64,000 nucleotides of DNA from Trichoplax adhaerens (GCF_000150275.1 NW_002060968.1:715788-779787); one strand, 5' to 3'. Shown: positions 16,170-39,564, numbered from the stretch's first letter. The notes: generated by a model from the letters alone, not told the origin. Program-made: numbers and translations.

Positions 16170-16938
16170 TGTCACAAAACAGCTTTGTAACAAGATAACG
16201 TAATGTACGATCAATAAGTCAATTCCTTGAACCACGTATCAAGGAACGATATCTGCACTGTCCTAAACACTTTTGCTCTACTAGCAGACTACACAAAGAC
16301 TTAAACGCCTCGTATTTTACATTAAACACTAAGTTTGAGAATCCACTTTATTACCCGATATACTGCATTTATATACTATTCCTCAATAGTTCATGAGTCA
16401 TAGTTAGTACGATTAGCTTTGGAATCATTTACTGAATTAGATATTAATTTTAGCTACTGCTCCCTTAATGCAGACGACAGTATTTACGAACAAAGACATC
16501 TGATGACTAATACAGAATAGTCAGATTACGATATGTTCTATCACGGAACATTTCCATGATAATTTACAGTCTACCATAAGTAAATTACAATCACAATGAT
16601 TGTAACTGTAAGCAGATGATTTGCATTCCCTATTATAACTATTAATTTCAGTATGTGTACAAGTGTCACTGTGATAAAAAGTCAGTGCTATATTAAAATA
16701 CAGTATATCCAAATTAGAAGTTAACTAAATAAGGATAGTCTAACAGAATTATCCTAACATTGATATTTCTACTGTAATACAGTATTTAACACTGTAACAA
16801 AGTGTCACTGAGATAAAAAGTCAGAGCTATATTAAAACGCAGTATGTCCAAGTTAGAAGTCAACTAAATAAGGATAGGCTAACAGAATTATCCTAACATA
16901 GATATTTCTACTCTAATACAGTACATAACACTATCACA
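16170..16938. mobile_element. Solo-LTR-like element, family A copy 2, with an internal tandem duplication of its last ~140 bp
   Basis: TGTCACA...TATCACA termini with a perfect 5-bp TSD AGCGT (16165-16169 and 16939-16943); ~16660-16799 is repeated at ~16800-16938. Confidence 0.88.
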
Positions 16939-16966
16939 AGCGTAAGTAATTGCAAATATATAGGTA

Positions 16967-17691: not shown

Positions 17692-17741
17692 NNNNNNNNN
17701 NNNNNNNNNNNNNNNNNNNNNNNNNNNNNNNNNNNNNNNNN
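17692..17741. other. Assembly gap (50 N)
   Basis: Run of Ns, preceded by low-quality-looking T-rich sequence with an isolated N. Confidence 0.99.
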
Positions 17742-17742
17742 T

Positions 17743-18034
17743 TTCAGAATGTGTATAAGTGTCACTGTCATAAAAAGTCAGTACTATATTAAAATACAGT
17801 ATATCCAAATTAGAGGTTAACTAAATAAGGATAGTCTAATAGAATTATCCTAACATAGATATTTCTACTGTAATACAGTATATAACACTGTAACAAAGTG
17901 TCACTGAGATAAAAAGTCAGAGCTATATTAAAACGCAGTATGTCCAAGTTAGAAGTCAACTAAATAAGGATAGGCTAACAGAATTATCCTAACATAGATA
18001 TTTCTACTCTAATACAGTACATAACACTATCACA
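17743..18034. mobile_element. 3' part of a family A element duplicating 16650-16938 (likely the alternative haplotype of the same locus)
   Basis: Same 140-bp internal duplication and the same ~26-bp downstream flank (agcg(t/a)aagtaattgcaaatatatagg). Confidence 0.8.
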
Positions 18035-19129
18035 AGCGAAAGTAATTGCAAATATATAGGCATGACGTTTTATGGCCGAAAATGAACATATTAAAATATT
18101 GAGTATACCGTATGTAAAGAAATTTTAATATAAATCTTTACCATAAATCTAGTTCTTCACTCTCTATACTTAAATAAGTCGATTTATCAAACTTGCAATC
18201 GAAATCTCAAGGCTAATTTATGAGCAAACATTCTATTGTAACTGTCAATCCCAGTATCAGTTGTTAGCTAATCATATGCTACAATATCGACCAAATTAAT
18301 TCTAAAAATTTGGTTGATAAAGTCCTGATAATAAGTGAGTGTAAATGACGTCGATTAGTAAAAAAGTAATCTCTTAGGATGCACGATCGATGCATCCCAA
18401 TTCAGAACTTTCTAGTGATTTGATGATCATATTCATACAAGCAAACTGATATTATACCTACCATTCAGTCTGTTAATGCAGTAACACAGAATATGTCTCT
18501 TTATCTTGACAGCTGTATTGGTCAATATATTTATGCAATGCATTCCGACGATATGAACGTATTAGAGGATAAGATTCAACTTAAATGGAAATCTGTTGCG
18601 AAATGAAATATTCATTTAGACAGACGGGTTCTTACAAATATCAGGGACTGGCATTTACTATACAGTAGCATTTTGTTTTATCTTGGATTAAGATTGATTT
18701 ATTGGTTCTATTTCACTTCCATGTGAAAGAACCATCGGTACTGATATTGATATCACTTGGTATAATCGTTAGCTCAGTATAACTTTCATCTTTTCATTGC
18801 AGTTGATAAAGTATTGAAATCGCACGGATAATCGTTACTTTAATATGAATTTAATAAAATATTCATATACATACTATTTTCTATTGCTCTTACTGTACAC
18901 CTATTAATATGGAACATAAGTTTCTTTATCAAAGAATGAATAGCAAGATATTTTAAACTATTCCACACTTGATTCGTTTCCTTATATATTACTTAAAGAA
19001 AGAGTTGGTTTTTCTAATATTTTCATAGATTTACTGTGTTCTACGGTAATCGCATTACTAATAGATCTAATATCATAATTCAAATTACTATCTTACTAAA
19101 GTTGTTGACAAGTAATTTATATTTCTTCA

Positions 19130-22500: not shown

Positions 22501-25389
22501 TTAATACTGGGCCAGTCGCAACTGAAAATAATCTCTTAATATCTAGGTTTAACTAGGGTGAGTGTCGGATATTTCTGCAATCAGTTGAAATACGGCAAGC
22601 CTCAATATCGAGCAGTGAGATCATTACCAGGTGGAAAAATTTCTCTGCATTGTTAATTTACCGGAAGAAAATATAATCTTAAACAATTTACCATCAATGG
22701 TTAATAGATTAAATAATGCTCAGTATAATAACTTTGAAATTTATTGTCAGCTATAGACGTCAAACAGTTCACCTGCATTGAAAAATTTTTGTTGTAAATT
22801 AAAATTACATCCAATTCTAATCGACATCTTAATATGCTGGTATCTAGGTTATTATAACATGTTTTAGTCTTGAACTAATTTGATTAATTTGTTATTTTAT
22901 AAGGAGGTGTTAAAAAAATATTATATTTTTATTTAGCTCAATAGTCTCTGTATGAAAATTAAATCATTGGAATAATTTTGTTAGAGCAAAACTGTGCCTA
23001 CCTACTATTTGATCCAATTAATTATATAAGAAAATTTCTTGGAGCAATTTTGAGCAGGTTAGAGATTATGTTGTTTATCTAAGTTGAATCTAAAGACCAT
23101 GTGCTATAGTATAGTCTTTAAATTGATTGTTATTTTATCATTTTACTATAGCTGCATTCATTGATTTAAATTGTTAACTTTCATTATTGAAAGGATTTGT
23201 GCTACGAGTATATGCGTAAGCAGGTTACTATTGAAATATACTACAATACAATTTTTAGCGTTTCTTTTCCTTAGATAAAGTGAAGAAAAATTAATTCAGT
23301 TAATTAACATCTTGCTATTGCTGAATAAAGTTACAGAAATAGTATGCCTTGTTTTGAACGCAAATGTCATTTGAAAAATAGATTCATGAAACTTGGTCAT
23401 TTTAGTAATATAATTTAATAGCTGAAGTGCAGTCTTTTTTTTGCAAAGTCAATTCTAATTTCAGTAAACAGATGGCGAAAAGTTGTATGATGTGAAAATG
23501 AGCGATTAGTTAAATACAGCATTATTAAATATCTATTTATCGCGTTAGAAATATATTTGCTAGAATAATCAGGAATATGAGATCGTAAGAAACCTACTCA
23601 TTTTGAAATGAAAGTAAGTTTAGATTAACCAGGACTTAAAAAGATACTATTTTTGAGTGCTTTTCACAAAAATACAGTGATAACGAAAAGTTATAAAAGT
23701 CTCTTATTTTAACAGGATTGCATTGAATACTTTTTGACAAATCAATCGAAAATAGATTTTAGAAGACATTGTAATAACAAAAGATTCTATGATTCTATCT
23801 TTTACATCCAAAGTTCTCTATCTGTATTACATGAAATATAATGGTCTATTATTATAATTGATTTTCAAGATAGGATCTATCGTTGGATATAGAAAGCGAT
23901 TATAGCAATTTATCATCTCACTTATCTATTAGTCGACAATCTTTATCGATACATCAGCTGTCATACAATATTATTAGATGTCAAACAAGTATTTGGTGCT
24001 CACCAATGCGTACTATCATCATTTAATTTTTTTCAGCCAGCATTTAATTAAAGCTGGACGCTTATTTGCAACCGCTTTTCACATTGATACTTTAATTAAT
24101 AGACTGTTTTACAGATTATATTACTACACTTTTTGGGGTTAATAGTGATAATTGTCAATCAAAATGATCACCTTTATCAAGTGCAATGTTCATTACGGAT
24201 CTCCTCTACTTGATTTGGATTTAGTATATCATAATTTGAACCGCACTAAGTTGAAATTAAAATTGAAATTACACTTCGATCTTTAAAATCATGTTCTATT
24301 TGTTAAATACAATAAAATTAAATTACGGACATTGTTTCTTGGGTATCAATAAATAAAATTATTTTCGATTTTTGACCGTCATTAATCATTAGTGGTACAA
24401 AAGAAGATCATAATGAATTAATAGGATACCTATACGTATTATAGAATAAGAATGATGTAAAGTGATTAAAAACAATTGATCATGGTTTTTCTGGTTAAAA
24501 TAGTGCAGATTTTTGCTATCCTAATCGTAAAACAAAGACGTCAATAACTACTTGAGTACAATCATTATTATCTAAATGAAAATAATGTATTCATATCTAC
24601 TGAATATTCGATCTTAATTGTAAGAAAGGCTAATTAAGGATTTAACACAACATGACAATTTTTTAAGGCGGATATTAGGATATTATTTATCTTTCGATTG
24701 CGGTTGCTGACATTGTCTATAATTAATGACTGTAAACTATGATTTTCATCCTTGAAATAGTTTGGTTCGTGGAAATCTTAATATAGACGCAATTATGATC
24801 TACATATATCAATGATTTAACTTCTCAACCTACGTATTTTGCTAGTAATGAAATCATGACGCCATCTATGTCGTCGATTATTTTCTATTCAATGTTGTGA
24901 ATAGAAATTGTGCTAAGTTTAGAATGGCGATAAAATAGAACTATTTTTACTATATTTCTAGCTAATTCTAAGATGAAAGAATATATTATCAGACAATACT
25001 TTATTTTAACTAGGTAGTAAAAAATGATCAAATAAAGCACGGCAAAGGATTGGAAATTTAAATTATCTTCGTTTATTAGCCTTTAAAAGATTTCGACAAA
25101 AGGATGCTATATTTGCTAAATATATCTTATCAAAACAGAAGATAATGAAATTTATTTCTATGAAATAGCAAAAAATAGCTTGAATAATCTTATTCTCTTT
25201 TGATTTAATGCTTTATTTTCAATTCATTCCAAAGATCAATTCACATGCAGAATCATTGTGTGGATAAACCTATATAAGGTTTGTACTAGCTGCATTTGCT
25301 ATCATAATTCATCAAAGAAGTTTGCGAACGAACATTTGAATCAGTTTTAAATCAATTTTCTTTCCAAAGTTAACTACAGATATCCAAAA

Positions 25390-28300
25390 ATGAAATATTT
25401 AGCCGTTGTAATCGTAAGTTCACTCTTTACTATTCATGTTGTAATAACATACCTTTTTGATTGATAGAATGATCCTGGAGTATGTAAAATTAACTATATC
25501 AGCTATCAGTACTTTCTAAAATAATGTCTGACAATTTCATCAAAGTCGGTGCTTGCAATTTTAGAATATGCAGCGTATACTTTCAAACTATTGTACGTAT
25601 TACAATACTGGAAGCTGCTGTCTACAATTATTTCAGAAACTCTTAATAGTCATTTTATGACCCGAAACTTGATAGTCATTTCTAAAAATAATTGTGTGAT
25701 GTGATGATATGTACTGAATTACTGTGCTTTCGCAGCTAAGATTTCAGTTTAGAAAGTAGTCATATTCACCTGTAATGAATTTTAAGTACCGATACTTCTG
25801 GCAGCTATTGTAATGTAATAAACAATAGCCAAATCAATTTCTAAAAGCGTTGTATTATAAATAAATTAACAAAAACTTTACTTTGTAAATTATCTTCTAG
25901 TTTGCTTTTGTCGCCGTTGCTATTGCAGGTAAGAATACGAAATCGCTAAGCCCAATACGTGTTAAACTAATACTGATGAATGTAAATTTATCAAAGAATG
26001 CAAATTTTCGCTGATACCCATTATCATTCTTAGCCAGACAGTACAAAACTCCAGAAAACTGCTTTATCATATTATGATAGTTTTAGCTGACATTTATTAG
26101 ATGAGAAGATCTATGTCCATATAGAAACGCTAGTGATTACTTATTACTATTTACTAGCAATATTGAAGTCGTAATCATTTCGGAAACCTTAAAAGTCAAA
26201 TGTCTAGTGTGAAATGTTTGTAAAATGTCTTTGAAGATACAATTTCATTTCGATCTTAAACACCTTACACCGTACTATATATCGATTGACTATTTATTCT
26301 GCAACAATAAAGGCAATCTTTAGTACTATACTCTAAATTTACTTACGTTGATATATAATGTTTTACTAACATTACTTTCTTTTCTTATATTTTTCTATCA
26401 TTAGCCCCAGCACTCCAAGAAAATAGTAAGTACAATATAGGAATTAAATTATTGCTAATCTACGTTATAATTATTCTTATTCTATCTTATTTCATTTTGC
26501 TTTTTAATATTAAATTTAAAAAATCATTATATTCCATAGTCTATTTTATGCAGTTATACATATAATTGCTACCGTGTTGTTGATAAGTAAGTCCAAATAA
26601 TTATTAAATTAATTATTAGAAATGTAATGAAGACCTTCTAAGTAGTGAATATATTTAAATTTTAAATAAGATCAAAAAGTGGTACTGCTTAGTAAATTTT
26701 CCATTATCAGAAGACAATGAAGGATAGATATTGGTTGAATTGCAGTTTATCACACAATAATCAGTGATTTACAAAGAATACATCATGTCATCCATTATAG
26801 TCACATTATTTAGATTGATATTAATTTGCATCATCTAAAAAAGCACTTAAATATACGGAAATGGACTCGTATTTCGATGTTCTTTATGGGACCGATATAT
26901 TTTCTTTATTATATAGTTAGCTATTCTTTCAAGGTAAACTAAGCCAAAAAAATATTAATTTAGATGAACAATACTTTGTAATTTATCCAGAGAATTGAAT
27001 TTCAATAGCGATATAATATTTCTGACTTCAAACAGGATTATAAATTAAAGTAGCAAATGACTGTGTTGGTACCATATTTTTGATATTCCTAGCTGATCCG
27101 AGCCGTAAGCTATGAATGATTAATCACAATAGTGAGATTTATACTTACGATTACAATGATAAATCGTGACTATATTTATACAAATTAAGGCTTGTGTTGA
27201 TTGCCTCATTTTACAGTTATTACTGTATTGATCTGCTTTCAGAAATCCGATAAAATAGGCTATGCAGTAAATATTTACTTAGATATAAGTGTTTGAATTG
27301 AGAAAAATATCATTGAAAGCTAATTTATGCAATGCAAATGTAATTTTAATGCACTTGGGCAAATCAGTACTGTTAATATATAATTTCATGTTATGATTAC
27401 TTTCTACCTTATTTAAATGCTATAAATATACTAGATGACGTTTTCAATGTAATTATTTAAAGTTAGTTTATTAACTTGCCAATATTGAAGTATTAGGTTA
27501 TTACCGTTGATCAAATATAGCGAATACAATCCACTGCTACCTTTATTATTCTATAAACTGTAAAATCTTGTAAATTTTTTACAATTAAATTGCTAAGGTT
27601 AATTAGCGGATTGCATAGCTGGCTACATCCACTATAGAATTAGTAATTTTCAAAAAAATTTTCTATTGCCTATATATTGGTAATTTGCCGTATAAAATCT
27701 TTCAAATATTTAGATAGAGAAGTATATTCGTATAAGCTCGAATGAAAGAGTTGCATAGGTTTGATATTAAGATTGAACGACAAAATTTTTTATATTTTAC
27801 GTTATCAGCTGAAATCGATTGGTTCGAAAATCGAGGAGACCACGGTAAAGAATATTAAAATCGTTTTAATTACACAAATTATGATTTGATCACATAATTT
27901 AAAGCTCCTATAATTATAGCATTATAACTAATTTTACTACTAGTTTGTCTACATATACATGCTAGAAAGGCTATTTTTAAGATGCTTGTTCTTTAATAAA
28001 TTTACAGATCAACTACCAAGTATCTAGAAAAATTAACGTAAAACAAATTTCTAAATTACTATAGTCTCCGGGATTCAGTATTCCTTAACTACCTGATAAG
28101 AATTTCACACCTTTGCTTCTACGTTAAACAACTATAAAACTATTTTTTTATTCAACTATCTGCCAAGCTTAAATACCCTTCAGCAGCAGCTATCATGTAT
28201 GAGTCATAACAGTACACAAAATTTAGCTCCTATCGGATAGCTAAATTAATACAGACATTATTTATAATTTAGAACATTTACTGAATGATTCTAGGTAATT

Positions 28301-31300
28301 AGACTACATTATATCCACACTCAGAATTATTTATAGTATCATCATTAATTGAATATCTGTAGGATATTCATCACAAGCGTTACTAGACATAACGTTATCA
28401 TCAATTAATATAAGTTAACTTATGAGAGCTCTTACTACAATACAGCATAATTTACCATAATAACATAGTAACTACTGTAATTCTTACTGTAAGTCATTAT
28501 TAGTTATCTCCATATACAAATGTTAAACACTAAATTTAGTCATTTACTCTCACGAAGGTTCGTACCGTGACAACGGAATATATGTATAAAATCATACCTT
28601 ATTTCGATTGTACTTTAAGTAGTGAAATTTGATTTCCTAAATGATTCATGTAAATTATGATACTTTATTGGTTACTTTTTGTTATCGATAATCTCGTTAC
28701 GAAAATAGTCAGCCTATTTAAGAAATATAAAAGAATACATAGTGCTAAAGTACGCTATAAAAAAGCTTATAGTAAACTTTAATTTTTACTGTTATTTTCA
28801 TGCTTGGATATTACAGTGTGTTAGATAAGTAGTTTGTCTACTTATATATGGTAGAAAGCTTATTTTAAACATGCTTATTTTTATATAAATTTATAGACGA
28901 AAGGAATGATGACCTAATGTCATGTATGTACAGCGAATATACGTTAAATACCACACTTTATGTTGATTGCACTTTAAGTGGAGAATTTCGATTTACTATT
29001 TGATTCATTTAAATTATGAAACTTCATTGGTATTCTTTGCAATCTATAATCTCGCAACGTAAACAGACAACCTTTTTAAGAAACGTAAGAGAAAAGATGC
29101 TGCTATAGTTCATATAAAGACTTAAAAGAAAATATTAATATTTACTTCTATTTTCATGCTTTGATAATTAATCATAATTATTACAATAATTGCAGAGCAA
29201 GAAATTCCACCTGGCATGGGAGGTAATAAGTGTTCAAAAATAATAAATCTTACTATTAAATTTAAGATAACTACAAAATTTTCTTACAAAGCAAGAAAAA
29301 CATTTATAATTCCGAAATGCTATTTACTCAATGTGTTTAATGCATGATTAATGCTGTATAACTTTAATTTTTTAATTGCTTTACAGTTAGTTTTTTCAAG
29401 AGAAAAAATTGTAAGTAGTGTTGTGTAACTGAACTATATTGCCGATTTTGGCCAAGTCAAGGAAAATATCTGACCATCTGACTAAAACTGTTTCAAATAA
29501 TCTTACCTTTTATCCATGTTAGCCTTTCCTAATAGAAGTAAGGCATTGTTAATATACCTCAAAGCCTATTTCATTCAAATTAAGACCGTTCTTATCGATA
29601 TCTAAACTTAAATCAATCTTTATACATTTATAGTGAACCAAATCAAGAGACAAGGTACGTAAGCTGTAATTTTTGATGTAAGAAATGGCATTTATTTCTC
29701 AATTATAAATAATGTCAATAATTTTTTTCCAATCGAACACTTTTCCATTTTTTCCGTCGCTACATTTAACCTCTAGACCGTAAGTTAAAATTTATTAGGA
29801 AGAAATAATTATAGAATTTGCAATACAGTACTTTACATAGTGGATATTTGCAATATGGCCTTCATTTACTAAGGCAAATTGATTCCCAACTAAAACACTG
29901 TTTTCAATATTTTTCTTCCATATCCTTTCAATCGTTAGCTAACCATAAGTCCATAATAAAATACAAATATCAACTGTATTTCTTTTAAAAGAGATTTTTA
30001 ATTGCTTGATATCTAATTGATAACGTTTATTTTGCTTTATAGTTAGCTTATTCAAGAAGGAAGGTAATTTTTTAGATATTTGATGGCAGAAATGAAAATT
30101 TTCAGTCATTATTTAGTTAAATAAATCAATCTTAATCAAATCATTTTCTTGATAACTTCTGAACCATTAGCTGATCAACGTAAGTCTGTAAATAATCAGA
30201 AAAATAATTTTTTACATTCATGTTAAAGTAGAATTACAGTTGCTTAATTTTGGTTAACATCATATATTTTGCCTTACAGTTGCCTTTTTCAAGAAGGAAG
30301 GTAATTTTTCGATATTTGACGACAGAAAGAAAAATTTCAATCATTACTTACTAAACTAAATCATCCTTGATCGATCTTTTATTTTGGTATCCTATCAAAT
30401 AGCTCCTACTCCCGGCTGTAAGTCTGCAATTAACTACGAAAACCAATTTTTGTATTTTATTTTGTAACAGAATATCAATAGCTAGTTATCTGATTGATAC
30501 TGTATTTTCGCTTTACAGTTGCCCTTTTCAAGAAGGAAGGTAATTTATTAAATATTTGATAGCTGAAAGGAAATTCTAATCATTATTTGGTTTACTAAAA
30601 TATTACTTATCAATCTTTTTCTTTGGTGTCCTATCAAATAGCTCCTACTCCCGGCTGTAAGTCTGCAATTAACTACGAAAACCAATTTTTGTATTTTATT
30701 TTGTAACAGAATATCAATAGCTAGTTATCTGATTGATACTGTATTTTCGCTTAACAGTTGCCCTTTTCAAGAAGGAAGGTAATTTATTAAATATTTGATA
30801 GCTGAAAGGAAATTCTAATCGTTGTTTGGTTTACTAAAATATTACTTATCAATCTTTTTCTTTGGTGTCCTATCAAATAGCTCCTACTCCCGGCTGTAAG
30901 TCTGCAATTAACTACGAAAACCAATTTTTGTATTTTATTTTGTAACAGAATATCAATAGCTAGTTATCTGATTGATACTGTATTTTCGCTTAACAGTTGC
31001 CCTTTTCAAGAAGGAAGGTAATTTATTAAATATTTGATGACTGAAAGGAAATTCTAATCGTTATTTGGTTTACTAAACTATTACTTATCAATCTTTTTCT
31101 TTGGTGTCCTATCAAATAGCTCCTACTCCCGGCTGTAAGTCTGCAATTAACTACGAAAACCAATTTTTGTATTTTATTTTGTAACAGAATATCAATAGCT
31201 AGTTGTCTGATTGATACTGTATTTTCGCTTTACAGTTGCCCTTTTCAAGAAGGAAGGTAATTTATTAAATATTTGATAGCTGAAAGGAAATTCTAATCGT

Positions 31301-33282
31301 TATTTGGTTTACTAAACCATTACTTATCAATCTTTTTCTTTGGTGTCCTATCAAATAGCTCCTACTTCCGGCTGTAAGTCTGCAATTAACTACGAAAACC
31401 AATTTTTGTATTTTACTTTGTAATAGAATATCAATAGCTAGATATCTGATTGATACTGTATTTTTTGCTTAACAGTTGCCCTTTTCAAGAAGCAAGGTAA
31501 TTTATTAAATATCTGATGGCTGAAAGGAAATTCTAATCGTTATTTGGTTTATTAAACCATTACTAATCAATCTTTTTCTTTGGTATTCTCGTGTCTGTTA
31601 ACAGACTGTAAGTCTTTAATTAACGACGGAAATCAATTTTTATATTTTATTTTGTAATAGAATATCAATAGCTAGATGTCTGATTGATACTGTATTTTTG
31701 CTTAACAGTTGCCCTTTTCAAGAAGCAAGGTAATTTATTAAATATTCGATGGCTGAAAGGAAATTTTAATCGTTATTTGGTTTACTAAACCATTACTAAT
31801 CAATCTTTTTCTTTGGTATTCTGACATCTGGCGGCAGGCAGTAAGTCTTTAATTAACGACGAAAATCAATTTTTTGTATTTTACTTTGTAATAGAATATC
31901 AATAGCTAGATGTCTGATTGATACTGTATTTTTGCTTTACAGTTCCCCTTTTCAAGAAACAAGGTAATTTATTAAATATTCGATGGCTAAAAGGAAATTC
32001 TAATCGTTATTTGGTTTATTAAACCATTACTAATCAATATTTATCTTTGGTTTCCTATCAACTAGCTCCTACTTCCGGCTGTAAGTCTGCAATTAACTAC
32101 GAAAACCAATTTTTATATTTTATTTTGTAATAGAATATCAATAGCTAGATGTCTGATTGATACTGTATTTTTGCTTAACAGTTGCCCTTTTCAAGAAGCA
32201 AGGTAATTTATTAAATATTTGATGACTGAAAGGAAATTCTAATCGTTATTTGGTTTACTAAACCATTACTAATCAATCGTTTTCTTTGGTATTCTGACAT
32301 CTGGCGGCAGGCAGTAAGTCTTTAACTAACGACGAAAACCAATTTTTTGTATTTTACTTTGTAATAGAATATCAATAGCTAGATGTCTGATTGATACTGT
32401 ATTTTTGCTTTACAGTTCCCCTTTTCAAAAAGCAAGGTAATTTATTAAATATTCGATGGCTGAAAGGAAATTCTAATCGTTATTCGCTTTACTAAACCAT
32501 TACTAATCAATCTTTTTATTTGGTATTCTGGCATCTGGCAGCAGGCAGTAAGTCTTTAATTAACGACGAAAACTAATTTTTTATATTCATTTCAATGAGA
32601 AATTTCGTATGCTTAATATTTGACTGATACCGTATATTTTGTTTTATAGTTAGTTTTTTCAGGAACGAAGGTAAATGTAAATTACTAATCCACCTGATGC
32701 TGAGGAGATTGCATAAATCAGGCTGGCAATCATTACAACACAAATTCACTTATCTTGATCTGGTATTTTAAAATTAGATGCCTACAACAAGAAAGCTGAT
32801 AAGCTCACAAATCCTAAAGGTAAGCTGTTTCAAAATTGGTAAAAGATTTTCTAGCTGCGGTAGTGCTTCAACTTGATTTTATGATATCTCCTTATGTTTG
32901 ATATCACCAATGTTTGCTTATTTTGTTGTGACATCTAGATTTGCTACGTAATTTCAACTTTCTCCTTATATCTTACTGCTCCTAGTAAATTTTAGAACAG
33001 TTTAATCTTAACTTATGAGGATGTGATTTATAGTAATAAACTAATATACAGATAAATTTTTCAAAAACAGAGGTGTGCCAATTTGAGAAATATAAAGAAA
33101 TCAGTCCTGCACTTTTGATTAAATGTTGCAAGAAATATTCCTACGTCTTGAGTACATCTAAACTTAAGCTGGTTGATATCAGTTCTAAGATTACTAATTT
33201 GTGATATTAATTTCTTTATTTATGTCCTTCATTTTCTATAGCTTCTGAAAGCTTAGCTATATGCGCAAGGCTTATCTGGTGA
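25390..33282 (+). CDS. Microexon-encoded secreted neuropeptide-like precursor (LF/FF C-terminal peptides, KK/KR processing sites), ~39 exons; 3' end uncertain
   Basis: AG/GT-flanked exons: 25390-25413, 25901-25928, 26405-26425, 27093-27104, 27809-27844, 28897-28923, 29067-29084, 29196-29222, 29387-29410, 29523-29537, 29634-29654, 29777-29779, 30043-30063, 30171-30179, 30280-30300, 30403-30417, 30519-30539, 30642-30656, 30758-30778, 30881-30895, 30997-31017, 31120-31134, 31236-31256, 31359-31373, 31476-31496, 31605-31607, 31709-31729, 31838-31840, 31943-31963, 32066-32080, 32182-32202, 32311-32313, 32416-32436, 32545-32547, 32650-32670, 32778-32819, 32939-32947, 33052-33072, 33242-33282. Joined: MKYLAVVIFAFVAVAIA|APALQENTDPSPEIDWFENRGDHDERNDDLMSYNLF-KK-QQEIPPGMGVSFF-KR-KNSFPNRMNQI-KR-QDLSLF-KK-EADQLAFF-KK-(EAPTPGFALF-KK)x4-EAPTSGFALF-KK-QDFALF-KK-QGIPLF-KK-QAPTSGFALF-KK-QGIPLF-KK-QGISFF-R-NEDAYN-KK-ADKLTNPKDLLHKFFKNRASESLAICARLIW*. 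Confidence 0.88.
28034..28572. mobile_element. 5'-truncated family B solo-LTR-like element inside the peptide gene
   Basis: Shares taacgtaaaacaaat(c/t)tctaaattact...gtctccgggattca and the terminal gttcgtaccgtgaca with 19130-19565; the left TG terminus is missing. Confidence 0.75.
30270..32680 (+). repeat. Tandem array of ~233-240-bp units (~10 copies); each unit is intron + short exon + intron + 21-nt exon
   Basis: cagTTGCCCTTTTCAAGAAG(G/C)AAGgtaat recurs at a 239-bp period (30519, 30758, 30997, 31236); a 473-bp higher-order period appears later (31709 to 32182, 31943 to 32416). Confidence 0.97.
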
Positions 33283-35149
33283 ACGAGCTTTAAATAGGTA
33301 ATATTTATTTACCAATTTGCTTTAGTAGCGACCTATAGTCCACCTCTTACAAATCTTGCTCTTCAAATTTTTATCAAAGGTTGCTTGACTACTAATTATG
33401 AGAGGCACAAACTAGTTCATTTTACACGAATCTGAAACTTGACGCTAGATCATTTTGAGATAGAATTAAATTGTTATATGGTAGTCTATACGCAGTGCGG
33501 TGTATTTCTGTATATGGCATCTGACTTTATAGTACTGTAAAGCTACCTCTAGGCGTAAAGTAAGCAGTAATCTTATAACTTTCATTATATAGGCATATAT
33601 GGTAGCATATATACAATTCGGGCCATAAACTGTTCTTTAACGGAATAATTCGTCAATAGAAGCAGTACTAGTACAAAATTTTATTTCTGTATTTGTTATG
33701 CACATTAAAGGCCGATTTAGTCGCTTGCAAAGCGCTAAGGCGTAAGCAATATTTTAATACAATTAAAACTTCTTTTATAGCGAAATAAGAAATACATGTC
33801 CCATTGTAGCATCGATTAATTTAAATGGTAGATTGGCTGGAAATTGTTGTCAATTTCGTCTTTACCCATAATTTTAAGATGTGCCACTTTTCTAGATTTT
33901 AGCTACGTCAATAGTAACTCGAATTATTCTATTTATTATAGTAGATCGCGCTGGCATGGCTGCACCCGATAAGATTGAATATATAAATGAACCATAAAGT
34001 AGACGATTAAGCACTTGCTATTTAAAATTCAAGAATCAAATAACAAATTTTACTTTGTTAAGCGATAGTAGATGTTTTGGTGTAATTAGGACAACAATGG
34101 AATACATTTGGGTAACCATTTTATCTAAATCTTCATCAAAACTCTATTTATGTAGTTGTCCCTTTATAGTGATATTCTATTCGTTGCATGTATCGTTAAT
34201 CTCAGTGTACTGTAAGTTATAAATAGCGCTCTTGTCCAGGAATAACTGATGTACAAGTACAATAACGTCTTCATGTTATCAGTATTAGCCCGAATGTAAC
34301 CATCAAAGCTATGTAATTATTGTCGTAGGTGTCATAAATCGAAATAAACCATACGATTAACTGTAACTTTCTGTCAAATATTTTATGTGGTGTTTTTCAT
34401 AAAAAAATGAGATCATTAGTTGCATCGAACCTACGATATAAAACAATCAAATAATCAACGCTAGTTTCGCAAATAGTAATCTACGTTTTACTATAGGTAC
34501 AGCACAATGATCAGCATTCATGGATGACCACCTGCGATAAAAATTTTATAGGGATAATCTATATTGTTGACAAACTAAAATAATGATGAATGTATAGTGC
34601 AGTACTTTGATAAGATATGTTACAGGATCATAACGCTAAACAGTCACTACGGATATATGAACGGTAAGTTTTAACGCAATCTAGATTGAACAAATTTAGA
34701 ACTTGATAGTGCGTAGCTGTCTTCCAAAACCAAGTATGAGGCATATAAGGCAACATTTACAAGTTCTTTTAAGAAATGAGGCACGTAAAGAAAATTCTTA
34801 GAAATTTTGATTTCACTTATTCGCTTCTACTGTAATATATTCGCTCAGTAACCGCAGTACAAATATCCAGGATTAGGAAACGTCAGTATCATTCTCGTAA
34901 TATACATTCTTTTTCAGACAATGAAAAAGTACATAACTATATCTCCTTGCACTTATTAATTACCGTTGCAACAAATCCTTTACGTAATTAGAATATAATC
35001 AATATTTAACTAGTAAACAAGGTACACAGAGATAGTTATGACTTATACAAAAATAGATGTTTCCTGTCGGAAAATTTCATTCCACGTCATTACAATAGTA
35101 CATCCAAACAGAATTCTTCTATGGCATACTAAATGATATGTCCATTCTA

Positions 35150-38230: not shown

Positions 38231-38818
38231 TGTCACAACCCTCACTTGTGGCAAAGGAAAGTCAAGAACTCTAGTGTAGTTACTTAAAACTTGGGCTATT
38301 TCTCCCAGTACTTTCAGTTTCTATGAGAGAAGTATTTGAGATCTCGATTTCTCGGCTGATCTCCACAGACAACTGACTAATTATTACACTATTCTTCATG
38401 ATATGAGTCTTGCCGTTTCTTGAGCAATTACTTTTTTTATTCTACAAACACACGCGCTTAAATAGGTTTCTACAGTGAATTCCAATATTAACGAGTGAGA
38501 ATTCACGCTTTACAAGTTACATTAATTAGTATAATACCATTACTAAATGTACATGTCGATATTCTCAGACTTAGATAGCTACAAGCTATCAGGTGTTAAG
38601 ACGCTTAACCTTCATCCATATACAGCTCAATTTTTAGAGATTAACATACCTTATAAACCTACAGTAAATTAACTGCTAACAACTTCTATTTTTATCTCAT
38701 TTCTACCATCCTATTATCAGCTACAAGCGCATTAAAACATAGCACATAACCTTATCTTATCTATTCATAAGCATTCATTAATTTACAGTTACTTAATTAG
38801 TAACGGCGTACCGTGACA
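38231..38818. mobile_element. Solo-LTR-like element, family C
   Basis: TGTCACAACC...CGTACCGTGACA termini with a perfect 5-bp TSD CTGAC (38226-38230 and 38819-38823). Confidence 0.88.
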
Positions 38819-39564
38819 CTGACATGAAAGACGGATGGTCTGCTACTAAGTAGCATTCTAGTCAAGAACTGGTGACATTAATTTTGCTATTCATATAGTC
38901 TTTGTTACGGCTTCGGACTTTCTTCGATTGTAACTGATAACGAACGACGGATGGTCTGCTACTGAGCAGCATTCTAGGCCAGGACTGGTGACATTAGTTT
39001 TGCTATTCATTTGATCATTGTTCTGGCTTCGGACTTTCTTCGAATGTAACTGATAGGAAAGACGGATGGTCTGCTACTAAGCAGCATTCTAGGCAAGAAC
39101 TGATGACATTAATTTTGCTATTCATATAAACCTTGGACAGGTGTACTGATAGGAAAGACGGATGGTCTGCTACTAAGCAGCATTCTAGGCAAGAACTGGT
39201 GACATTAATTTTGCTATTCATATAAACCTTGGACAGGTGTACTGATAGGAAAGACGGATGGTCTACTACTAAGCAGCATTCTAGGCAAGAACTGGTGACA
39301 TTAATTTTGTTATTCATATGGTCATTGTTCTGGCTTCTGACTTTTTTGGATTGTAACGGATAACGAACGACGGATGGTCTGCTACTGAGCACTGAGCAGC
39401 ATTCTAGGCAAGGACTGGTGACATTAGTTTTGCTATTTATTTGGTCATTGCTCTGGTATGATGTAAGATTGAGTGTAAAGTATCGATACAGTTCCACATG
39501 ATCACAGTCTAGTTTTATTACCAAAAATGGATGATTCATTTCCCGCTGCAATTCTAGAGTCTCG

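Follow-up and report, generated by a model that had tools for sequence, protein, structure and literature searches.

Can a gene be split so finely that none of its six reading frames reveals it? This question is raised by positions 25390 to 33282 (plus strand) of a 64,000-nucleotide window of the Trichoplax adhaerens genome (NW_002060968.1:715788-779787), a locus that includes a 239-bp tandem array reported as a satellite. An earlier, sequence-only reading of the window had proposed that about 39 microexons with AG/GT flanks join there into one stop-free frame, and that the product is a secreted, multi-copy precursor of LF-type peptides. Our analysis confirmed that the gene is real and expressed and that it is a microexon-built precursor of the LF type; the gene is probably undescribed. 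We hold it to be highly probable that this strongly transcribed gene encodes a secreted prepropeptide of about 224 residues from about 36 microexons, and that its products are most likely LF-family paracrine signalling peptides. The proposal of a secreted LF-type precursor is thus supported by RNA junctions, by the sequence logic of the array and by the match of the C-termini to known LF peptides.

A regular-expression search of 25390-33282 for segments of the form AG-(3-45 nt)-GTAA, together with an explicit model, gave 36 exons of 3-42 nt that join into a single 675-nt stop-free frame of 224 amino acids, closed by the TGA at 33280-33282. The chain and its frame therefore stand as proposed, while the exon count is 36 rather than about 39 (37 if an optional 12-nt exon is counted). 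All exons have an AG acceptor and a GT donor, the donors being mostly GTAAG. Exon length is divisible by 3 in 34 of the 36 exons, symmetric short exons thus carrying the bulk of the coding sequence of a secreted product; downstream of exon 2 (28 nt), all introns are in phase 1 and all exon lengths are multiples of 3. Since the internal exons are all symmetric (phase 1-1), gain, loss or skipping of a module is frame-neutral. Coding sequence makes up 8.6% of the 7.9-kb gene span, and the GC content is 43% in exons versus 27% in introns, in a window whose overall A+T content is 69%. Within 25390-33282, the longest six-frame stretch without a stop is 68 amino acids, and the list of open reading frames (ORFs) of the window contains none of 90 amino acids or more in this interval. 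The gene is therefore invisible to six-frame or ORF-based reading, as had been claimed.

We then compared RNA and DNA reads with the locus over positions 25200-30420. The runs hold 42-74% of the genomic words, and the RNA evidence comes from whole-animal contigs, which drop rare isoforms. X7 and X8 are RNA-seq runs of study P4 (organism B), and X4 belongs to study P2 (organism A). Spliced contigs with the predicted joints were found in all three RNA runs, that is in at least two studies, and they show 14 exons of 9-36 nt, among which are those of the split signal peptide and of the first array unit (joints 25413>25901, 25928>26405, 26425>27809, 27844>28897, 28923>[29067-29084]>29196, 29222>29387, 29410>[29523-29537]>29634 and 30063>[30171-30179]>30280, then 30300>CTCCTACTCCCGGCT, which corresponds to 30403-30417). 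Junction-spanning RNA, the observation on which the sequence-only reading had staked its proposal, was thus found for these 14 exons exactly as predicted. The depth of the spliced contigs was 491-2100, with the sole exception of 30063>30280 in X8 (48.6), and the spliced form was 50-100 times deeper than the intron-containing contigs (depth 5-20). X1, a DNA-like run with a flat depth of about 85, had none of the predicted joints. The 5' end of the X4 contig lies at 25345, directly behind an Illumina adapter, and the ATG at 25390 is the sole ATG in 25290-25392. No alternative splicing or exon skipping was seen in the verified part in the three RNA runs, whose contigs would drop rare isoforms. 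One further X4 joint, 29943>30043, considered as evidence for a 3-nt exon, was rejected, its depth of 8 and its non-canonical CA..AG borders indicating an intronic indel or an assembly variant. The exonic differences of organism B from organism A are 25901 T>C (F>L), 29204 A>G and 29531 A>G (N>D), and many more single-nucleotide differences lie in introns.

Might the transcript nevertheless be a spliced non-coding RNA or a decaying pseudogene, its open frame being a by-product of the repeats? The repeated units do make the open frame of the array partly non-independent, and decayed modules are present in intron 4. However, the first ten exons, which are unique and lie outside the array, contain no stop in frame 0 against 5 and 7 in the other two frames, and after shuffling of their content the frame was still open in 0.6% of trials. 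A frame open in these exons alone among the three, a clear signal peptide followed by dibasic sites, the great depth of the spliced form and the contrast in composition between exons and introns all argue for a coding gene, and we regard the absence of one as extremely improbable.

The RNA-verified protein reads MKYLAVVIFAFVAVAIA and then APALQENTEIDWFENRGDHDERNDDLMSYNLF-KK-QQEIPPGMGVSFF-KRK-NSFPNRMNQI-KR-Q... Its N-terminus MKYLAVVIFAFVAVAIA has the features of a signal peptide: the n-region carries a K, the hydrophobic core spans 15 residues (mean Kyte-Doolittle value +2.9) and A-I-A occupies positions -3 to -1, the AIA/AP boundary fitting the -3/-1 rule of signal-peptide cleavage. Hydropathy falls from +2.9 at the N-terminus to -1.7 downstream. 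As exons 1 and 2, which encode the two halves, are joined in RNA (25413>25901), the proposed signal peptide split over two exons is borne out by both the sequence features and the transcript.

Behind the signal peptide, the modelled precursor has a pro-region of acidic character, followed by 14 peptides with LF or FF at their C-terminus. These are bounded by 13 KK, KR or KRK sites, the first five of which lie in RNA-verified exons, and one of these sites stands directly behind nearly all predicted peptides; the earlier estimate of about 14 such peptides, mostly flanked by KK or KR, agrees with this model. The first four predicted peptides are one that ends in ...SYNLF, QQEIPPGMGVSFF, QDLSLF and EADQLAFF. 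The exons that follow would add EAPTPGFALF (four copies), EAPTSGFALF, QDFALF, QGIPLF (two copies), QAPTSGFALF and QGISFF. The model also contains one non-LF peptide, NSFPNRMNQI. In the mechanism that we propose, each 239-bp unit would supply two exons, one of 15 nt (APTPG) and one of 21 nt (FALFKKE), signal peptidase would remove MKYLAVVIFAFVAVAIA, a prohormone-convertase-type enzyme would cut at the KK/KR dibasic sites, and carboxypeptidase trimming would leave about 14 LF- or FF-ending peptides that are not amidated. Peptides with an N-terminal Q would probably carry pyroglutamate, a modification that Najle et al. 2023 (PMC10580291) measured on QPGHALF of the LF precursor. Once released, the peptides would most likely act as LF-family paracrine signals.

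At their C-termini, the predicted peptides share with the LF peptides the motif G-(F/I)-(A/P)-L-F and the dibasic site behind it, and signalling is therefore the most likely function, although this is a resemblance and not a result. The published Trichoplax members are DDSQDGYALF, QPGHALF(R) and NPSNIGHPLF (bioRxiv 10.1101/360925 and PMC10580291). Bath application of LF peptide leads to flattening and rotation of the animal (Varoqueaux et al., bioRxiv 10.1101/360925), and the LF gene is a marker of cells that form a row close to the rim (PMC12013895). The same secreted precursor could instead yield peptides with no signalling role, be it defensive or antimicrobial, digestive, or associated with mucus and adhesion. 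Placozoan secretory cells also produce arminin-like antimicrobial peptide precursors, in which a signal peptide is combined with acidic pro-regions, the predicted peptides lack an amidation signal (there is no Gly before KK), and the very high apparent mRNA depth would suit a bulk secretory product too. We nevertheless consider such a role unlikely: the peptides are 6-13 residues long, uncharged to acidic and devoid of Cys, unlike cationic antimicrobial peptides, they are laid out as multiple dibasic-flanked copies, and their C-termini match those of LF peptides that are non-amidated yet behaviourally active.

We next considered the 239-bp array, in which each unit consists of a 21-nt exon, an intron of about 102 nt, a 15-nt (or 3-nt) exon and an intron of about 101 nt. 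All 11 units have the same two donor hexamers, whereas 55% of the remaining intron columns are variable (P ~8e-5 for the 12 donor columns); nor does the AG in front of the 21-nt exon differ in any of the 11. Among themselves, the four core units share 95-99% identity, and with the RNA-verified first unit 86-89%. These data bear on a different account of the locus, according to which a real but short 5' gene is followed by an array and downstream sequence that stay outside the mature mRNA or are spliced quite otherwise (with the array left out, its units used variably or the 3-nt exons passed over), the list of 14 peptides then being largely wrong. Splicing is indeed seen for the first array unit only, the contigs break at the repeat, the symmetry of all exons makes skipping frame-neutral, and the 3' exons are weaker (a GTAAAT donor, two possible last acceptors). 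But RNA runs into the array (30063>30171-30179>30280>30403-30417), where there is no stop or poly(A) signal, the donors are invariant in all units versus 45% invariant intron columns, and the likeness of the core units to each other and to the verified first unit includes the splice signals. A short 5' gene is thus, in our opinion, very improbable. At the 3' end, the pyrimidine tract is better at acceptor 33242 than at acceptor 33257, which the sequence-only reading had used, and frame and stop are identical with both. The closest poly(A)-like signal is ATTAAA at 33465. The tandem acceptor at 32540-32547 offers a NAGNAG-type choice, both outcomes being in frame (QGISFF or QAGISFF).

Several candidate exons are very short, five of them consisting of one codon. 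In the four units with a candidate 3-nt exon, a 6-nt deletion took away the old acceptor, and through substitutions an AG arose at a distance of three bases from the donor, which stayed as it was. At the candidate ACC exon upstream of the array, the X7 and X1 contigs differ from the window by C>A at 29779 and by G>C at donor position +5. As for the candidate 12-nt exon of intron 3, organism B (X7, X8) carries a 108-bp deletion (26982-27089) that stops 3 nt short of it and removes its pyrimidine tract.

A number of observations weigh against the gene and product as we describe them, and we give them together. The RNA reads cover the locus up to 30420, so that 21 exons out of 36 are predictions, as are the stop codon and the 3' untranslated region. 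When the four units with 3-nt exons are taken alone, the conservation of their donors does not reach significance (P = 0.18). Splicing could pass over the 3-nt exons, the products then still being in frame as QVALF and QVPLF, and the copy number of the array could be an assembly artefact. A blastn comparison of 25200-33500 with the locus of the known LF gene gave weak matches only (E >= 0.005), all on the opposite strand, with no homology of units or introns. Finally, none of the predicted peptides is listed in the searched part of the supplementary tables of Najle et al. 2023 (peptidomics in Table S5, PMC10580291). The mass spectrometry search of that study was database-driven and based on gene models, and would therefore miss an unannotated gene.

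How, then, is the present gene related to the known LF gene? Identity of the two was rejected: the window encodes none of DDSQDGYALF, GHALF and GHPLF, and the scaffold of the LF gene is a different one (C1414, versus C1389 for the present gene). The genome assembly holds the published peptide genes, with the DGYALF copies of LF, nine PGMFPF, 37 KSIFGGK and arrays of ISLFNE. In the LF gene, each copy occupies one 33-36-nt phase-0 exon with AG/GTAAGT flanks in a 238-bp tandem unit, and the copies read DSQGYALFRKD, DSQGYPLFRKD, DSQDGYALFRKD, DSQPGHALFRKD and DSQIGNALFRK. We found no description of the LF precursor as microexon-built in the open literature. The LF gene model is listed without a signal peptide in Najle 2023 (PMC10580291), which suggests that this model is incomplete; the signal-peptide exon was not found at the LF locus. 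Like the LF precursor (TrH2_TrispH2_008150), the present one has non-amidated (A/P)LF ends after G and an aromatic residue or His, before a dibasic site: GFALF-KK, IPLF-KK and DFALF-KK compare with GYALF-RK, GHALF-RK, GYPLF-RK and GHPLF-KK in the LF gene, where PLFKKE and ALFRKD contexts also occur, and N-terminal Q or acidic residues are common to both genes. Both also carry their copies on microexons in tandem units, with a period of 238 bp in LF and 239 bp here. In contrast to the single phase-0 exon per copy of LF, two phase-1 exons, one of 15 nt (or 3 nt) and one of 21 nt, make up each of the present copies, so that an intron interrupts the peptide itself (APTPG/FALF). The signal peptide is split too, there are candidate one-codon exons, and the peptide sequences differ. 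As the two loci have no detectable DNA similarity, the case for paralogy is made by short peptide motifs and the shared architecture; common descent is plausible but unproven. The present gene is best read as a relative of the LF family with a more extreme layout, two microexons being used per peptide.

Copies of this kind had been said to lie normally within long exons. This holds for the SIFGamide, MFPF and LFNE precursors of the same organism, which likewise combine a signal peptide with many tandem copies and basic or acidic processing sites, and whose copies are 42, 36/72 and 33 nt apart in continuous frames, i.e. in long exons with no microexons in the copy region; SIFGamide is also amidated, unlike the peptides predicted here. 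It does not hold for the LF gene, and since the latter already has one microexon per copy, microexon architecture is not unique to the present locus. The ISLFNE copies (every 33 nt) at C1414:238387-238503 lie about 15 kb from the LF gene, and a second ISLFNE set is present on a small contig (C1024:5497-5679), which could represent either an allele or a duplicate that has not been placed. Outside placozoans, the coding sequence of schistosome micro-exon genes consists mostly of very short symmetric exons, of 3-81 bp, between which lie introns of far greater length (PMC10526429). These genes share with the present one a secreted product, a coding sequence carried in bulk by short symmetric exons and frame-neutral gain, loss or skipping. 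They belong to another phylum and show no sequence relationship, so that the likeness is an analogy only; moreover, their products are small proteins varied by alternative splicing, not dibasic-flanked copies, and no alternative splicing was seen in the verified part of the present gene.

The locus also bears traces of how such modules come and go. Decayed copies of exon 5 and of exon 6 are present in intron 4, the identity being 82% between 27941-28008 and 28830-28897, and 75% between 28673-28751 and 29031-29109. This duplicate is split by a repeat of about 520 bp (28034-28555; depth 63490 in X1) that looks like a non-autonomous transposable element, and RNA skips the whole duplicate module. 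The decayed module, the young core of the array and the 97% identity of the units at 31709 and 32182 together show birth and death of exon-intron modules. In our reading, the gene expands and contracts via tandem duplication and decay of entire exon-intron modules.

The coordinates of all these features are collected in Table 1.

Table 1. Features of the microexon gene and of the LF precursor gene. Positions are those of the window unless a contig is named.
Feature	Position	Strand	Support
TATA-like box (TATATAAG)	25271..25278	+	sequence, upstream of exon 1
Exon 1, coding part, 24 nt, MKYLAVVI (signal peptide, first half)	25390..25413	+	RNA joint 25413>25901, depth 491-1552, X4/X7/X8
Exon 2, 28 nt, FAFVAVAIA + 1 nt, sets phase 1	25901..25928	+	RNA joints both sides; organism B has C at 25901 (F>L)
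Exon 3, 21 nt, APALQEN	26405..26425	+	RNA joints 25928>26405, 26425>27809
Candidate 12-nt exon (TDPS)	27093..27104	+	AG/GTAAGC flanks; unsupported; joint 26425>27809, between: not known
Exon 4, 36 nt, (T)EIDWFENRGDH	27809..27844	+	RNA joints 26425>27809, 27844>28897
Decayed exon 5 copy, in-frame stop, inside intron 4	28008..28037	+	RNA skips it: 27844>28897
Dispersed repeat, ~520 bp, inserted in intron 4	28034..28555	.	at least 471 candidate genome copies, 84-90% identity
Decayed exon 6 copy (would read SLFKK), donor lost (ATAAAA)	28709..28726	+	sequence
Exon 5, 27 nt, DERNDDLMS	28897..28923	+	RNA joint 27844>28897, depth 663-1449
Exon 6, 18 nt, YNLFKK	29067..29084	+	letters within X4 joint 28923>29194; loose end AGCAAGAA after 29084 in X7, X8
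Exon 7, 27 nt, QQEIPPGMG	29196..29222	+	RNA joint 29222>29387
Exon 8, 24 nt, VSFFKRKN	29387..29410	+	RNA joints both sides
Exon 9, 15 nt, SFPNR	29523..29537	+	15 letters between 29410 and 29634 (X4); X7 loose ends, one A>G
Exon 10, 21 nt, MNQIKRQ	29634..29654	+	5' junction in RNA; 3' junction predicted
Candidate 3-nt exon ACC (QVSLF -> QDLSLF)	29777..29779	+	flanks ctctag/ACC/gtaagt; no RNA joint reported
Exon 12, 21 nt, (L)SLFKKE	30043..30063	+	RNA joint 30063>CTGATCAAC>30280, depth 835 (X7), 49 (X8)
Exon 13, 9 nt, ADQ	30171..30179	+	9 letters between 30063 and 30280, X7 and X8
239-bp tandem array, 9.5 units	30267..32526	+	TRF score 3316, 91% matches; reported as satellite
Exon 14, 21 nt, LAFFKKE, first 21-nt exon of the array	30280..30300	+	RNA joint in, loose end out
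Exon 15, 15 nt, APTPG	30403..30417	+	loose end CTCCTACTCCCGGCT directly after 30300, X7 and X8
Exon 16, 21 nt, FALFKKE	30519..30539	+	predicted; unit 88% identical to RNA-verified first unit, splice sites intact
Exon 17, 15 nt, APTPG	30642..30656	+	predicted, model and unit alignment
Exon 18, 21 nt, FALFKKE	30758..30778	+	predicted, model and unit alignment
Exon 19, 15 nt, APTPG	30881..30895	+	predicted, model and unit alignment
Exon 20, 21 nt, FALFKKE	30997..31017	+	predicted, model and unit alignment
Exon 21, 15 nt, APTPG	31120..31134	+	predicted, model and unit alignment
Exon 22, 21 nt, FALFKKE	31236..31256	+	predicted, model and unit alignment
Exon 23, 15 nt, APTSG	31359..31373	+	predicted, model and unit alignment
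Exon 24, 21 nt, FALFKKQ	31476..31496	+	predicted, model and unit alignment
Candidate 3-nt exon ACT (QDFALF; skipped -> QVALF)	31605..31607	+	flanks aacag/ACT/gtaagt; 6-nt deletion took old acceptor of 15-nt exon
Exon 26, 21 nt, FALFKKQ	31709..31729	+	predicted, model and unit alignment
Candidate 3-nt exon GCA (QGIPLF; skipped -> QVPLF)	31838..31840	+	flanks ggcag/GCA/gtaagt
Exon 28, 21 nt, IPLFKKQ	31943..31963	+	predicted, model and unit alignment
Exon 29, 15 nt, APTSG	32066..32080	+	predicted, model and unit alignment
Exon 30, 21 nt, FALFKKQ	32182..32202	+	predicted; unit 97% identical to unit 31709
Candidate 3-nt exon GCA	32311..32313	+	model and unit alignment
Exon 32, 21 nt, IPLFKKQ	32416..32436	+	predicted, model and unit alignment
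Candidate exon, GCA 3 nt (32545-32547) or CAGGCA 6 nt	32542..32547	+	tandem acceptor cagcag before GCA/gtaagt (32540-32547)
Exon 34, 21 nt, ISFFRNE	32650..32670	+	predicted; weaker donor GTAAAT
Exon 35, 42 nt, DAYNKKADKLTNPK	32778..32819	+	predicted, scan and model
Terminal coding exon to TGA 33280-33282	33242..33282	+	predicted; acceptor 33242 or 33257
LF precursor gene	C1414:~251100-255100	-	located via DGYALF

The 239-bp unit occurs at one locus of the 105.6-Mb, 1414-contig assembly. Paralogous arrays elsewhere in the genome were sought and rejected, the unit and the AG-xxLFKKx-GTAA exon pattern being found only here, apart from one stray pattern match that is probably due to chance. Nor does the window hold a sibling microexon gene, as we saw in it no other such tandem array and no convincing signal-peptide first exon. 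Other repeats of the window are 139-bp units that occur twice, about 1.1 kb apart (16661-16939 and 17757-18035), around an N-gap at 17692-17741, and 96/116-bp arrays at 38818-39319 that overlap a 178-amino-acid minus-strand ORF at 39015-39551.

We also looked for the gene in published work. Beyond the peptidomics tables discussed above, the predicted peptides are absent from Mayorova 2025, and the predicted peptide strings had no match in a placozoan context in open papers or preprints. The comparison with placozoan precursor lists that the sequence-only reading had called for left the peptides without a counterpart in the lists searched, which include part of the tables of Najle et al. The open literature contained nothing linking Trichoplax or neuropeptide precursors with microexons, and a search of metagenome contigs with the 36-nt DNA of a single exon, exon 4, gave 0 matches. 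We put forward only tentatively, as a possibility that we think somewhat less probable than its contrary, the full reading that these data allow: an undescribed, highly expressed LF-family gene missed by all gene models and by peptidomics, with two-microexon copies, in which one-codon exons (ACC, ACT, GCA) choose QDFALF/QGIPLF over QVALF/QVPLF, whose peptide repertoire changes in evolution, and may also be controlled, as modules are gained, lost or skipped without a change of frame, and whose architecture is unreported for any animal.

Placozoans coordinate their behaviour without neurons, via secreted peptides, and the known repertoire of these peptides is small and taken from gene models. 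The present gene would add about ten new LF/FF peptides (e.g. EAPTPGFALF, pQGIPLF, pQDFALF, EADQLAFF and QQEIPPGMGVSFF) as ligands for behaviour assays and receptor deorphanisation, and it would show that microexon genes escape database-driven peptidomics. Its layout is unusual, with introns inside the peptide copies, about 9% of coding sequence and possibly one-codon exons. Together with the microexon-built LF gene, it would offer a natural system for studying how exons of 3-21 nt are recognized, and how a peptide family grows by duplication of exon-intron modules as opposed to repeats within an exon.

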